Below, one piece after another: positions 216-11,028 of a stretch of 64,000 nt of DNA (position 1 is the first letter of the stretch; the number at the start of each line of letters is the position of its first letter). The notes under the pieces were generated by a model. It had not been told where the DNA came from and ran no database searches. It worked only from the letters and a program-made list of their open reading frames with translations. Source of the stretch: Hyaloraphidium curvatum SAG 235-1 (Eukaryota; Fungi; Monoblepharomycota). The stretch covers positions 62,001 to 126,000 of the forward strand of contig JAIVFI010000015.1 of the NCBI GenBank assembly GCA_025558095.1, in the 5' to 3' direction. The position numbers were made by a program, and so were the translations under genes.

Positions 216-1739
216 ATGAAGGAAAATGGAGAGTTCCAGTTCTCCGCCGCGGAATGGGCTGCACTATTCCCGTCGCCGGTGGAGCTGGCGCCCTCTTTCG
301 ACCCGCCGCCGCCGCCGCGCGAGATGCCGCCCCCGCTCGGCCGTGCGGACCTCCTCGGCGGGCTGCCGCCATTGCTTCGCGCTGCGGCACGCTACCAGAT
401 CATGCTCGCACCGATTGCGGCGTACTGGCCGTACCTTTGGGCCTTCCTTCATACCCCGATCTTCGGCCTGCTCGGCGCCGTCTACGCGTTTGGCGGGGAC
501 GAGTTCGGCGCCACCCAGAAGGCCGTAGCCATTGCCACCCTGTCGCTCTCTTTCACCACCGCCCTGGTCTTCTACTTCGTCAGCGTGCTGGGTCGCACCC
601 ATTGGATGCGGTTCTTTGGCGACGCGGACGGCCCAATCCCGCCCACCGACGATGATGCCAAGGTGGCAAATGGAGACGTGGAGAGGGCTGCCCCAGCTCC
701 CTCGCCCCCTCCCACGGGCGCGTCGTTCGATCGCTCTGATCTGGCCGCCGTGGTTCGCTACGGGGTGCTTGTCCGAGGGCACCCAGAGTCGCCCCTTGTT
801 TCGCATCGGCCCAACGACCCCCTATGTCCTTGCCAGCGCGATTCCTGCGCAGGACCGATTGTTTCCGTCATGGGGCCCGTCCGTTTGGCCGACATGCTGT
901 ACCCGGCGGTGCTCGATATCTTCACACACTTTTGTGCGGCCTGGACGGCTCTGGTCACGCTGGCCTCCCAAACCTGGACGACTTGGTGGAGCGCCCTGTT
1001 TGCCGCCGTCTTTGTTGGCGTGGCGATTCCCCTGTATTCTTTGACCGTGCAGCCCTTGGTCGTCGGGATGGGCCTGCCCCAGATGGCTCTGCAGCGCCGC
1101 ATCAACAACCGCGCCATCACCTTGACTCTCTCCTCCTTCCTCACCGGCGCCGAGGCTGTTTTGTCCGGCGGTGCGTCTCTGGAGCCCGGGAACGCCGAGA
1201 TGCCGGCACTGGATTCTTCATACGCGACCCTCCACGACGGCCTGACCCACGAGTGGATGAACCGCACCCTCACCCTCAGCCGCGGCCGCGGCGGCCTCGT
1301 CGCCCTGCTTGTCGCCATGTTCCTGAATGCCGTGCTCTACATCGTCTCGTCCAGCTGTGTGCCGGTCTGGGTTCTCGGAGCGCTGGTGCAGATGCTCGTC
1401 AATCTCGCCCGCACCCTCTTCGTCGTCGCGGCAAACAACACATCGGTTGAGGACGCCGCGACATCGTACGCCCTCGCCCGGTCGCGGCTGCAGCGCCTCC
1501 TCGCCCTCGCCGACCCCGCGGTCCTCGCCTCCCCGGCGGTCGGCCCGGCGATGCAGCACGAGAAACTCCTGGGCTCGTTCGCGGACGCGGATCGGTACCG
1601 CGCCAAGTTCCTCGGGTTCCGCGTGGGCAGCGGGACCGCGAGGGGGTTCGTGGTGACGGCCTTCACGGTGCTCGTGGGGTCGTGGACGATCGCGAGGAGC
1701 TTGGGGGTGAGGATACAGATGGACAACGTGTGCCGTTGA
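216..1739 (+). CDS. Multi-pass (about 7 TM) membrane protein, putative gustatory-receptor-like / 7TMIC family, intronless
   Basis: 507-aa ORF with about 7 hydrophobic segments, a CPCQRDSC motif in a long loop and a C-terminal RAKFLGFRV...TAFTVLVGSW. Paralogous to 7711-9471. Confidence 0.75.
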   Translation: MKENGEFQFSAAEWAALFPSPVELAPSFDPPPPPREMPPPLGRADLLGGLPPLLRAAARYQIMLAPIAAYWPYLWAFLHTPIFGLLGAVYAFGGDEFGATQKAVAIATLSLSFTTALVFYFVSVLGRTHWMRFFGDADGPIPPTDDDAKVANGDVERAAPAPSPPPTGASFDRSDLAAVVRYGVLVRGHPESPLVSHRPNDPLCPCQRDSCAGPIVSVMGPVRLADMLYPAVLDIFTHFCAAWTALVTLASQTWTTWWSALFAAVFVGVAIPLYSLTVQPLVVGMGLPQMALQRRINNRAITLTLSSFLTGAEAVLSGGASLEPGNAEMPALDSSYATLHDGLTHEWMNRTLTLSRGRGGLVALLVAMFLNAVLYIVSSSCVPVWVLGALVQMLVNLARTLFVVAANNTSVEDAATSYALARSRLQRLLALADPAVLASPAVGPAMQHEKLLGSFADADRYRAKFLGFRVGSGTARGFVVTAFTVLVGSWTIARSLGVRIQMDNVCR

Positions 1740-3863: not shown

Positions 3864-5920
3864 CTACCACCCGTCCATCTCGGCGCACACCTCCACGAAC
3901 GTCGGCCTGTCCCCAGGGCTGGGCGCCCACATCCTGCCCATCAGCGCCCACATCTTGTCGTCAGCGAGATCGGGCCTTTCGGGCCGCTCTCCGCGAAGCA
4001 CGGCCTCGATGAGCTGCGGCGCACGATTAGCCAAGGTGAAGGTAACGAGACGCCCGGTCCTCCCACCGCCCCAATCGGAAGCCCCATGAAGGGATATCCC
4101 CCCTCGTCCGTGACCTCGTAGCACACCATGGCGAACGCGTACACGTCCACGGGCGGGCGGAGCTTGCCACCCCGCCAGAGCTCGGGCGCCATGAACATGG
4201 GGGTGCCGCCGCCGCCGCCGGCTTCGCCCTCCCGGGTTGTCGAGCCCGTGCTGAGGTGGGTGCGGACCTTGGAGAGTCCAAAGTCGGCGATCTTGGGGAC
4301 GTCGTGGTCTGCCCCAAGGCAATGAGGGCGTATCAGGCAAGGCGCAAGGATCGCACCCACCAATCATGATGTTGTCGCACTTGAGGTCCCCGTGGAGCAC
4401 CTTGAACGAGTGCAGGTAGGCCATCCCCGAGGCGACCCCGCGGAGGTACTTCAGCCCCAGCGCCTGGTCCCACCGCTTCGCGTCGAGGACGTCTCGCATG
4501 CTGCCGTCGACGAGCTCCAGATCATGAGCGGGGGGTCCTCGCAGAAGGCGAGAAGGGGGAGGACTAAAACAGGCGCTGTCAGCGCCATCGTCGGCCTCCG
4601 CGGCGAGCGATCCCCACTGTTGCGCTGGGTCAGCCCATCCCACACCCCGATCTCCTCCAGGAACATCTTGACCATCCTCGGCGTCACGTTACCCTTGATC
4701 GTCTTGACCGCCACCGGCGTCGCGCCCCTAAGCAACCCCTTGTACACGGTTCCGAAGGAACCCTCGCCGAGGACGGCGCGGTCCGAGTAGCTGACCTCGT
4801 CCTTGGTGATGCGCAGCTTGGAGATTTAGGCCGAGTGGTCGGACCGCCCGCCCGCGGAGGCGCCGCTGGAGGAGCCGTCCGAAAACTGCGAGGGCAGCCT
4901 GGTGGCATCCGAGTCGCCCGAAGGTGCACGCGGGGGAGGCGGTTTGGCAGGGGGCGCGGCGCCGGCAAGCTTGGCCTGGAGCGCCGCCTCCTGCTCGCGG
5001 ATCTCGAGCTCCTTCATGCGGAGCTCCAGGGCCTCCCGGGCGCGACGGGTCTCGGCTTCCTCCTTCTCCCGCGCGGCCCGGGCGATCTCGGCGCGACGGG
5101 CTTCCTCCTCCCGACGCCGGCGATCCTCGTCAGCCCGCTTCTGGGCCTCTTGGGCCTGCCGTGCCGCCTCCTGCGTCTGTTGGGCCGCTCGGCGCTCCGA
5201 AATTGCATGCTCGATAAGCCTCTTCCCGTCGAACGAGGCTAGGTCGGCACCGGTCTGGCCCAGGGCGTTACGCTTCGTCACGTCCACGCGGTCGGGGCGC
5301 TGGAGGAGCATCCTGATGACGTCATCCTTCTTGCACCGGCAAGCAAGGATGAAGCCCGTGTTGCCGTCCCCATCCACGGCGTCCAAATCGACCTCGCGGC
5401 TGTCGAGGAGAATGGAGACCACATCTGCCTTCCCGAACCAGCAGGCCAACACAAAGCCCGTCACGCCGCGGAGAACCACCTTGGCGCCGCTGCCGTCGTC
5501 GAGCTCCCCCGTCTTTTCGGCTCTGACGTTCGGGTCTACCCTCGCGTCGGCTAGGAGCAGCCGGACCACGTCGGCGTACCCTCTCGCGCACGCGTAGATG
5601 AACCCCGTCCACCTGTCGTGGCTCTTCGCGTTCACGTCCACCCTCGCGTCGGCGAGGAACAGCCGGACCACGTCGGCGTGCCCGATCCAGCACGCGAAGA
5701 TGAACCCCGTCCACCCGGAGTTGATCTTCGCGTTCACGTCCACCCTCGCGTCGGCGAGGAGCAGCCGGACCACGTCGGCTTTCCCGTTAGAGCACGCGAC
5801 AATGAACCCCGAGTGCCCGCCCTTCTTCCAGTTGACGTTGACGCCCGGCTTCGCGAGCAGCTGCCGCACGCGGTCCGTTCCCAGGGCAGGTACGCGGAGA
5901 GGTCGCCCCGCTGCGGCGCC
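3864..5920 (-). pseudogene. Ankyrin-repeat + coiled-coil + TKL-type protein kinase, disrupted
   Basis: ANK repeats (GFIxAC..G..DVVRLLL), then an in-frame TAA at 4826-4828, then GEGSFG, VAVK, HGDLKCDN, DFG and APE over 3 introns. There is a 1-nt frameshift near 4519-4520 (ATG ATC TG GAG CTC GTC). The 5' end is unclear. Confidence 0.75.
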
Positions 5921-6258
5921 ACGGCAGCGAGGTCCCGCCGCGCGCGATCCCCCCGTGCACAACCTCGTTTGGTTTGCGGTCTCGACCTTCGGCCGCCTGC
6001 ACGACGCGGCGGACGAACAGCTCCGTGTTTGGTCTCGAGAGATCTCTCCCCCGCGCACCAAATCCGACGGCAAAGACTGGGATGTCGATGGTCTCATGGC
6101 CCGCCAGACCGGCCGTCTGCGCGCCGTTGTTCAGCGGGGGCGCTTACTGGGTTGCCAACAGCTTATGAACAGGTTCAAGGAAGCCTGTACCCGGCAGCTC
6201 GGCGGACATCTAACCCCTCCCCTCTTCCCCGAATTCAATGTATATGGCGTGACGTGAT

Positions 6259-7489: not shown

Positions 7490-7710
7490 CCCCTTAGGGA
7501 CGCGTTGTTGTGTTGTTTGAGCGGGCGATCGGTGACGCGTGCTCGCGGCCGTGCCTCTGCATGCGGCGCGGAGGAACGTGATGATCGTTTTCAGACATGC
7601 TGTGGATTCGGGAGCAGGTCGAGATTCGTGGATTGGGGCTTCTTTTCAGAGGGAGAACGAGCTACTCGCCGTGTGCTCTGGCCTCGACGCGACTATCCCA
7701 GCAGGACTAC

Positions 7711-9471
7711 TCATCCCTGTACCGTGCAGTACGTCCCCAGCTGCAGCCTGAGCCCGAAAGCCCGGAACAGCGTCGCAAACACCGTCGCGACGGCCACGCC
7801 GATGTTGATCAGCGACGCGGTGGTCACGCTGAACCCGAGGAACTTTGCCCTCGGCATATCGTCCGCGATCACGAGCATCGCGTCGCGGTGGGAGGAAAGG
7901 AATGCCGCGAGGCCGGGGGCCGGCGGCGGCTACAAAGGGTCGTGCGGCCGGGCATGCAGTTCCGCGAGGAGCGACGTCAGCGCGCCGGCGGATTCCCGGT
8001 ACGCCTGCGAAGTCGCATCCGCGGACGCGTTGACGAGCGCCATCACGGCGAGCATGACGGATGCAACGTGCAGGCCGAAAAGGGGGAACGCGAGGCCCCA
8101 GGCCGGGAAGCACGAACCTCCGGTGGGGAGGGAGCACAGGAGGGCGCCGAGCACGCAGGCGGCGGAGCCGGCGAGGGGAACGTGCGTGTAGGTCGAAGCG
8201 ATGACGCTGCTCTGTACCGAGACGCGGATGTCCGAGGCCACGCGGGCGTAGAATTCCGGGAGCGGGTACGTGGCCTGGGATCGTGCCGGCAAGGGAGTCG
8301 GCGCGCCAGCATCGAGGGAAGGGGCGACGGCGGCGCGGACGAGGTCCGCACAAGCGCCAATGAACTCGCCGCACGTCGCCCTGGCCGCCCGCAGCTGCAC
8401 GGCGCCGATGATCCGGGCGTTGACCCACCTAAATGCTCCCGATCCGCGTGCCGTCGCTGTCGCGGAACTGGTGACCACGCCGGCGACGTAGATGGCCAGG
8501 CAGGCCGCGACCCAGCCCTGGAGCGGCGGCGTGCCCGGCGCCCACAGGTTCCAGAAACATAGCGCCGTGATGGCGGCGAGGTATCCCCATAGCAGCACAA
8601 AGGTAAGCAGGACAAAGCGCAGGACCACGGGCCAGCCGCCGTGCGCGAAAAAACCCAGGCATTGCGGGCAAGGGCAGGTGTCGGATCGCCGGAATCCGGG
8701 GTCGGCGGTACCCGCTCCTTGGCCCGATTCTGGATCGGTCTTGCCCGCTCGCTCGCCGCCGCGTGCCGGAGCGTACAGCCCTTCCAAGGCGGCGACATCG
8801 CTGCCGGGCGGTGCATGTCGGAGAAAAGAGTCCGTCCCCGGATGACCCCCACCGGTGCGAATCAAGTAATACGCCATTCTGGAGCTCATGTCGCCGACGA
8901 GCTCCGGATCGGCCGGCGACCTGAACCCGGGTGCAACGATCGCCCGGTGCTGCTGCACGACCATGGAGCCCAAAGTGGCGAAGTGGCAGAGTAGGATGCC
9001 GGTGCAGGCCAGGGCGAAGGGCGCGATGGGTTCGCCGGGGTCGCGGGAGAGGCCGATCGCAGCCAGGAGGGCGATGCACGACAGCAGCATGGCGACGTTC
9101 CCGAGCACGAACGTGCCGGCGTACTTCTCGGCCACCGCCAGCGCCAACCGGGCCCTCGTAAGCACAGCGAGGGGGAGCAGGCCGCCCCGCTCGAAAGCTT
9201 CGGCGGCCGCGCCTTCGGACATCGGGGCGATGTCGCGGTCCAGAAGCGGCCGGTACTCGGGCCCGGGTAGCGGCAGGGACAGTTTGCGGCGGGTCTCTGG
9301 GTCCGCAAGAGATCGATGACGTGGATCCAAGACACCCTCCGCCTCAGGTGTGCGGTGCAGGATCCTCCGGCGGACCTGTTTGTCGGGCGCCGACGCGACG
9401 GTTTCGGGCAGCACCGAGAACGCGTCCGGGCCGGCTAGCCCCGTCTTCCGAGGAAGATCTACCTCCTCCAT
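7711..9471 (-). pseudogene. Second 7-TM (GRL/7TMIC-like) paralog with one in-frame TAG at 7930-7932 (pseudogene, null allele or readthrough)
   Basis: 513-aa ORF with CPCPQC. After the TAG the same frame continues 72 codons (…RAKFLGFSVTTASLINIGVAVATVFATLFRAFGLRLQLGTYC…) to TGA at 7711-7713, homologous to the C-terminus of 216-1739. Confidence 0.75.
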
Positions 9472-9761
9472 GGAAATCCGTGTTTCGGGCGAACGACAGT
9501 GTTCGACAACTCGAGTGGGGCTCTAGTTGGGCTCTCGGGCAAATCCCTTGGCGCCACCCAGAGCCGACGACCTCCCATCTTCGAGGCCCGAAACCTGCGC
9601 TCCAGTCTCGCTCAGCTCCATTGCTCGTCGCGTGTGTTCATTTTCTGCGCGGGACTTCGCCCTCCTCTGCGGAACTTGGTCCACTCCCGCGCCGAGCACT
9701 GTCTCCCACGCCACACCGTCGCCCACGCGCTCTCTGCTCATTTGCCGCACGGAACCCCGAC

Positions 9762-11028
9762 ATGCCGCTCTTTTCCGGCCTCCGCGTTGTCGACTGCGCC
9801 TCGTACATCGCCGGTCCCGCGGCGTCGGTGGTCCTTGCCGACCTCGGCGCCGACGTGGTCAAGATTGAACCGCCGGAAGGTGACGCGTATCGCACCTTCA
9901 TCGCGGGCGAAAGATACCACTACGACGTCGGCAACCGCAACAAGCGCAGCCTGTCGGTGGATTTGAAGCACCCCGAGGGCAAGAAGGTGCTGCGCGACCT
10001 GGTGGAGGCGGCGGACGTGTTCGTCACGAACCTGCTGCCCGAGGTGCGGGCGAAGCTGGGGGTGGACTACGAGAGCATCAGGGCGGTCAATCCGAGGATC
10101 ATCTACGCGAGCATGACGGGGTACGGGGAGGTCGGGCCCGAAAAGAACAAAAGCGGGTTCGATGCCACCGCGTGGGTTGCTGGCGAATGTCGGGAGGACG
10201 AAATCTGACATAGCATGCTCCGAAACCCACAGCTACTGGGCCCGCTCCGGCCTCCAGAACCTCGTGCGCCCCGGCCGCGATGCCCCTCCTGCCCCCTCGG
10301 TGATCGCCATGGGCGACCTCCCGAGTTCCGTCTCCCTCTACGCCGCCATCGTCACGGCCCTGTACCGCCGCGAGCGCACCGGGCTTGGCTGCGCCGTACG
10401 CACCTCGCTCCTCGGCAACGGGATCTGGTCCAACTCGACGCAGATCCAGGCCACGTTGGACGGCGTCGGGGTGGACCACATGTTCCCGCCCCCGCCGAGG
10501 GAGGAGCGCGTGTTCCCGCTGGCCATGAACTACCGCTGCGCGTGCGGCAAGTGGATCTTCCTGGCCGTGCTGAACGACAGGCAGGTTCCCGCGCTGTGCA
10601 GGGCGCTGGGGCTGCCGCAGCACGCCGAGGATCCCAAGTGGGCCACGGCGGAGGCGAGGAAGGAGAACCGCGGGGAGGTGATTGGCATCCTCGACAGGGT
10701 GTTTGACACGCGCGCTAGGGAGGAGTGGGCGCCGGCGCTCGAGGCCGCGGGGATCACCTTCTCTCTGGTGGCGACGCTCGAGGACGCCACCACGGACGAG
10801 CAGGCCCGCGCCGCGGGGATCTTTGTCCCCTTCGCGCACGGGCCGGGGGAGGCGGTGGACTCGCCGGTCCACCTCGAAGGGGAAAGCAAGGTGCCGTTCA
10901 GGCGGGCCTCATCTACGGGCGAGGACACGGTGGAAGTGCTGCGCGGACTGGGGTACGGGGAGGCCAAGATCGCGGAGCTGGTGAAGGCGGGGGCGGTGAA
11001 GGACGGGGCGGGCAAGGCGAAGCTGTGA
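9762..11028 (+). CDS. CoA-transferase family III (CaiB/BaiF)
   Basis: LRVVDCASYIAGP, LADLGADVVKIEPPEGD, NRNKRSLSVDLK, GYGEVGP. One intron, 10172-10232. Confidence 0.92.

Follow-up and report, generated by a model that had tools for sequence, protein, structure and literature searches.

Whether 7TMICs outside animals, which share the fold of insect odorant and gustatory receptors (Or/Gr), work as chemoreceptors or channels is an open question, and the repertoires described in unicellular organisms hold one to six genes. Among fungi, the published members come from two Spizellomyces species with one gene apiece (SpunGRL1 and SpalGRL1), and Thecamonas and Vitrella carry six genes each (PMC7746228). 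We analyzed a 64,000-nt stretch (hereafter the window; contig JAIVFI010000015.1, positions 62,001 to 126,000) from Hyaloraphidium curvatum SAG 235-1, a fungus with no flagellum, no rhizoid and an unclear lifestyle (PMC6899921). An open reading frame in this window, ORF1, is most likely one of approximately 400 divergent, unannotated genes that form a lineage-specific 7TMIC family in H. curvatum and a relative, whereas odorant-receptor-type channels in other fungi have so far been single genes. The family is real and unusually large, with a known fold and a distinctive module. A literature search, with most subscription journals outside its reach, found no description of it. As a whole, the observations are best explained by ligand-gated sensing channels of the Or/Gr fold, a reading to which we give a probability of roughly 0.5.

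ORF1 (216-1739, plus strand) encodes a seven-transmembrane protein of 507 residues, belongs to the main subfamily, and is intact and intronless, in agreement with a preliminary description of the locus, whose quoted motifs are all present in the translation. A scan with a hidden Markov model (HMM) found ORF1 and ORF2 (7711-9471, minus strand) to be the sole family members in the window. The lineage expansion that had been suggested was well supported by counting. A 33-base pattern for D-x2-C-x-C-x4-C matched the genome at 363 places, compared with 38 in a control, and recovered 55 of the 68 known main-subfamily genes, which led to the estimate of about 400 loci including pseudogenes. The genome search with ORF1 gave 699 candidates, the best 85 or so of which were scored. 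Several NCBI gene models (P0002, P0021 and P0050) fuse one family member with another or with an adjacent gene, so that family counts based on annotation are unreliable. In a profile search of 1.84 billion representatives, 476 clusters matched at E≤0.001 and 430 at 1e-10; the 30 matches traced, among those listed, were 27 hypothetical proteins of H. curvatum and three proteins from the Logan run SRR26194948. More distant relatives may be among the 326 weakest matches. A metagenome scan with the member P0080 found no relatives.

The contigs of SRR26194948 (L084, L085 and L086) have a GC content of 54–55%, compared with ~67% in H. curvatum, carry fungal-type genes (TRPY1/YVC1 and Hamartin), and share a convergent ankyrin/HLH gene order with G000:C35, in which the ankyrin gene is 62% identical. 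They come from a relative of H. curvatum and are possibly a second genome for a poorly sampled lineage. Their three family members are intronless and keep the motif, with the shorter x2 spacing in P0054; among the local paralogs scored, the best match to each was 32–48% identical. In the tree they fell at three separate places, two of them as sisters to other proteins (support, 0.92–0.96), so the family had probably begun to expand before the two species diverged.

The family is under purifying selection. By a simple counting method and with high GC content at third codon positions, the ratio of nonsynonymous to synonymous substitution (dN/dS) was 0.25–0.44 in 22 of 22 close pairs. Median pairwise identity was 27%, yet H197, C204, C206, C211, R299, C381, N408, G467, T484 and C506 (ORF1 numbering) were near-invariant across 183 sequences, and the exceptions were largely truncated or mis-modelled proteins. 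Because copies are intronless, dispersed and in some cases broken, one might take the family for a repeat that is amplified selfishly or is for the most part non-functional. We consider this very improbable, since it is already largely refuted by the purifying selection and also conflicts with residues held invariant at such low identity, with the ~90% of sampled main-subfamily loci that are open, and with the presence of the family in a second species.

Seven hydrophobic segments were found in the family-average hydropathy, as had been described. The fold was predicted with two AlphaFold models, of ORF1 and of the intact paralog L032, a stand-in for the subfamily of ORF2; the two subfamilies are ~20% identical. 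For both models only Or/Gr proteins ranked at the top, aligned in register from transmembrane segment 1 (TM1) to TM7b, which supports well the Or/Gr-like fold proposed earlier. The extracellular loops (EL) are about 6, 9 and 5 residues long, compared with about 98, 77 and 66 for the intracellular loops. TM4, TM5 and TM6 are long (helices 257–316, 335–379 and 384–431), in the manner of a cytosolic anchor, and were so again in the second model. TM7 is split into a helix (442–455), strands 464–465 and 468–469, and a second helix (472–495). Helices 43–49 and 52–68 precede TM1, fall inside the region that the Or/Gr matches cover, and may correspond to an N-terminal re-entrant loop (TM0). The positive-inside charge bias, ambiguous at EL1 and the one line of evidence used for orientation, suggested that the N-terminus is inside and the C-terminus outside, as had been predicted.

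Compared with insect Or/Gr structures (AaegOr10, MhOr5, AgamOr28, ApisOr5/Orco, DmGr43a and BmGr9), the fungal family is alike in the way its seven helices are predicted to pack, in having short loops on the outer side, a long TM4–6 and a TM7a/beta-hairpin/TM7b arrangement, in a conserved pore helix set against a variable bundle, and in a large birth-and-death repertoire. It differs in having no detectable sequence similarity to them, an intracellular loop 1 (IL1) of ~98 residues with one His and three Cys (His/Cys3), an outer Cys pair, intronless genes, and a TM7b whose end is basic and Gly-rich and is followed by a short tail. The TM7b motif (T/S)YhhhhhQF of insect Gr/Or and animal Grl proteins is reduced to its T: with the register set by spacing after the hairpin rather than by residue-level structural alignment, T484 was present in 97% of members, with V/L at the Y position, S/G/T at Q and V/I/L at F. 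SpunGRL1 similarly keeps one of the four TM7 motif positions; no sequence link to the chytrid and protist GRLs turned up, and no direct comparison with them was made. Plant DUF3537 proteins share the 7TMIC fold, long intracellular loops and a largely unrecognizable TM7 motif, and were language-model neighbours at 0.84, with 7tm_7 at 0.86; however, PF12056 matched 0 of 73 members. Pfam searches with the single protein and with these 73 members returned nothing relevant, HMMs gave no link to other 7TMICs, and PDB sequence HMMs gave weak hydrophobic matches only, such as AcrB (E=0.04). The family lacks the narrow Gr/Grl motif and the DUF3537 signature, and no sequence bridge to other 7TMICs was found among the matches listed; by structural criteria it very probably qualifies as a 7TMIC.

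Two points weigh against reading the family as sensing channels of the Or/Gr fold: the structural alignments to insect Or/Gr had identities of 6–12% at root-mean-square deviations of ~5–6 Å, and the Q/F gate motif is absent. The first, together with TM-scores of 0.25–0.46 against insect structures, where more than 0.5 to known members was sought, and the missing HMM link, is what would be expected if the likeness were convergent, or an artefact of aligning helical bundles, and the protein were an unrelated transporter or other membrane protein. This is quite improbable given that two models from such divergent subfamilies placed only Or/Gr at the top and in register, that the hairpin-split TM7 and long TM4–6 were reproduced, that a TM-score of 0.54/0.67 was reached with an unnamed cnidarian cluster, and that no transporter fold scored near in the structural search, a confident match to an unrelated transporter family being what the preliminary description had named as contrary to its proposal.

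The absent gate motif also bears on a second alternative, in which the proteins are genuine 7TMIC homologs with a role other than small-molecule sensing. They would act in recognition or defence, by detecting macromolecules, non-self cells or parasites, or else would work inside the cell as channels of organelles or as scaffolds, which may also be the case for PHTF-like proteins. In favour of this, the organism is non-motile (PMC6899921), and the long IL1 resembles the long TM2–TM3 loop of Class-B PHTF-like 7TMICs (10.1101/2023.08.30.555482), of which the described animals have one or two conserved genes, unlike the ~400 here. Large birth-and-death families are also usual among immune and recognition genes, a pattern that fits this alternative. 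Nevertheless, extracellular loops of 5–9 residues are too short to hold macromolecule-binding domains, and variation is concentrated in the membrane bundle, where identity was 0.17–0.22 (TM1–TM6), compared with 0.42–0.52 in the His/Cys motif, EL3, TM7b and the tail. We regard this alternative as rather unlikely.

By analogy with the known channels, each subunit of a ligand-gated sensing channel would lie with its N-terminus inside and C-terminus outside, four subunits would assemble through a cytosolic TM4–6/TM7a anchor, and TM7b would line the central pore (PMC12635824). A small molecule bound in the variable TM1–TM6 bundle would open a cation channel. With S/G/T and V/I/L at the Q and F positions in the register used here, a hydrophobic gate could remain. 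Such a family would provide the cell with a broad repertoire for sensing chemicals.

The features of ORF1, all on the plus strand, follow this layout. TM1 (residues 71–92), a short EL1 and TM2 (residues 99–126) occupy 426-593 and have the lowest conservation among the helices. TM3, a short Trp-rich EL2 and TM4 lie at 888-1058, followed at 1074-1352 by TM5 and the cytosolic helical extensions of TM4 and TM5, which resemble the anchor domain and contain the conserved R295 and R299. TM6 (1365-1508) is a long helix (residues 384–431) with the near-invariant Asn408. The TM7a-like helix (442–455) and the beta-hairpin (464–469, KFLGFR) lie at 1539-1625, in the S7a/hairpin/S7b layout of PMC12635824, and TM7b, the predicted pore helix, at 1629-1700; it is the most conserved transmembrane segment (R476, T484, W490 and R494). 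The closest paralog of ORF1 (L002/L005; G000:C15:54178-55704) lies ~6 kb before the window, inverted and split by a frame change; it is 64% identical to ORF1 in the 5′ part and 88% in the 3′ part.

The loop between TM2 and TM3, cytosolic loop 1, carries His197-x6-Cys204-Pro-Cys206-x4-Cys211 (804-848), a putative Zn site. The CPCxxC motif reported earlier is real, but ORF1, like most members, has the spacing CPC-x4-C, the subfamily of ORF2 has x2, and an upstream His, equally fixed, had been overlooked. His was kept in 179 of 181 sequences and the three Cys in 180/181, 179/180 and 179/180. Because one His and three Cys are fixed family-wide on the reducing side, a structural Zn that folds the loop would be the simplest occupant. 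The cluster had been proposed as a metal or redox sensor, and the family could on that basis be redox- or metal-gated, with oxidation in cytosolic loop 1, or release of Zn from it, opening the channel. A set of four near-invariant ligands on the probable cytosolic face would suit this, as would GUR-3 and LITE-1 of Caenorhabditis elegans, 7TMICs that are gated via a cytosolic Cys by peroxiredoxin (10.64898/2026.01.22.701078). However, the important nematode Cys is a single redox residue, not a His/Cys3 site, and homology of the sites has not been demonstrated; one shared redox input would leave ~400 divergent paralogs unexplained; and four fixed ligands suit a structural Zn knuckle better. Sensor gating is thus improbable, and near-invariance in a family of ~27% median identity is better read as a structural metal site. 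Judging by the published 7TMIC descriptions consulted, this putative zinc-binding module would be new to the superfamily. A chemoreceptor system of ~400 tuned channels, expanded independently of animals and equipped with such a module, which may tune gating, is a tentative proposal, somewhat short of even odds.

On the outer side, Cys381 lies within the five-residue EL3 (1356-1358), and the near-invariant, probably extracellular Cys506 is C-terminal (1731-1733). The terminal motif had been given as Q..C; the Cys is there, but four residues past the Q rather than two. Since the two residues sit beside short strands in both models (strands 381–383 and 499–501 in ORF1), a Cys381–Cys506 disulfide is the simplest and probable pairing, which would tie the C-terminal tail to EL3 beside the gate.

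ORF2 had been described as a second intronless paralog. It is a paralog, but a distant one that runs from 9471 to 7711 on the minus strand, and it is not intact. Direct BLASTP between ORF1 and ORF2 was not significant (E=0.13), whereas an HMM made from the main subfamily, with the subfamily of ORF2 left out, matched ORF2 at E=5e-21 when the stop was read as X, and the intact relatives of ORF2 at E=1e-27 to 1e-32; by this match the two are true paralogs. ORF2, of 586 codons and from a small divergent subfamily, contains His219 and Cys266-Pro-Cys268-x2-Cys271 (8659-8817), with an insertion that lengthens the His-Cys spacer. It is interrupted at codon 514 by an in-frame TAG (7932-7930), after TM6 and before TM7a and TM7b, so that a product ending there would be without the predicted pore helix. 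Beyond the stop, TM7a, the hairpin, TM7b and the terminal Cys582 are intact and in frame (7714-7929), and these 72 codons were conserved against L032 like the remainder (dN/dS, 0.45 and 0.36, respectively).

Several accounts of the TAG were rejected. A contig from a public run, marked 'RNA?' and possibly from the same strain as the assembly, spans 7590-8038 with zero differences from it, which counts against an assembly error. The run holds spliced RNA (GT-AG joint at 4563-4618), but the contig shows no splice or skip at the TAG, and the candidate acceptor of an intron lies inside the codon-by-codon alignment with L032. Sixteen of 73 intact members end in TAG, contrary to reassignment, and a plus-strand reading of ORF2 meets multiple stops. 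Read-through is a further, less simple possibility. The TAG is most simply explained as a recent nonsense change, and ORF2 is a probable recent pseudogene. In its subfamily about half of ten loci appear broken or partial, compared with roughly a tenth of the listed loci in the main subfamily. Most likely the family evolves by birth and death, with ORF2 a recently dead copy.

A deep run contig (7,173 nt; depth, 159), at 8428-9900 and beyond, spans the 5′ half of ORF2 and extends upstream of it, whereas depth was 12 in the 3′ part and 8040-8413 had no contig; the deep contig may be an overlapping neighbour transcript. Divergent from ORF2, a gene on the plus strand from ~9764 onward may encode a family III (CaiB/BaiF) CoA-transferase, which its start resembles. 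An ankyrin-repeat open reading frame and then a kinase fragment lie at 3864-6097 (minus strand), with a 54-nt GT-AG intron at 4564-4617 that run X1 shows spliced out. The segment 5945-6300 attracts contigs of very high depth that derive from other loci and is thus repeated elsewhere. TMEM39 (PF10271) was a language-model neighbour of the family at 0.87 and is a candidate for 7TMIC-like features. The viral structure library gave no significant match to the model; weak long matches were seen with ~440-residue giant-virus proteins in BFVD (A0A1V0SCD1 and A0A3G4ZRZ0), and in the ESM Atlas an unnamed 417-residue cluster with Nucleocytoviricota members fitted it at TM 0.53/0.62. By these models, giant viruses may carry 7TMIC-fold proteins.

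Because a cultured fungus offers ~400 paralogs that lack introns and are easy to clone, the question of whether non-animal 7TMICs act as chemoreceptors or channels becomes directly testable, and residues of the gate and pocket could be studied in an alignment of great natural depth. If the proposed reading is true, a large repertoire of the Or/Gr type would have arisen a second time, independently, and a single-celled fungus that is walled and non-motile would possess a chemoreceptor system of insect scale, raising the question of what a fungus that does not swim needs to sense.
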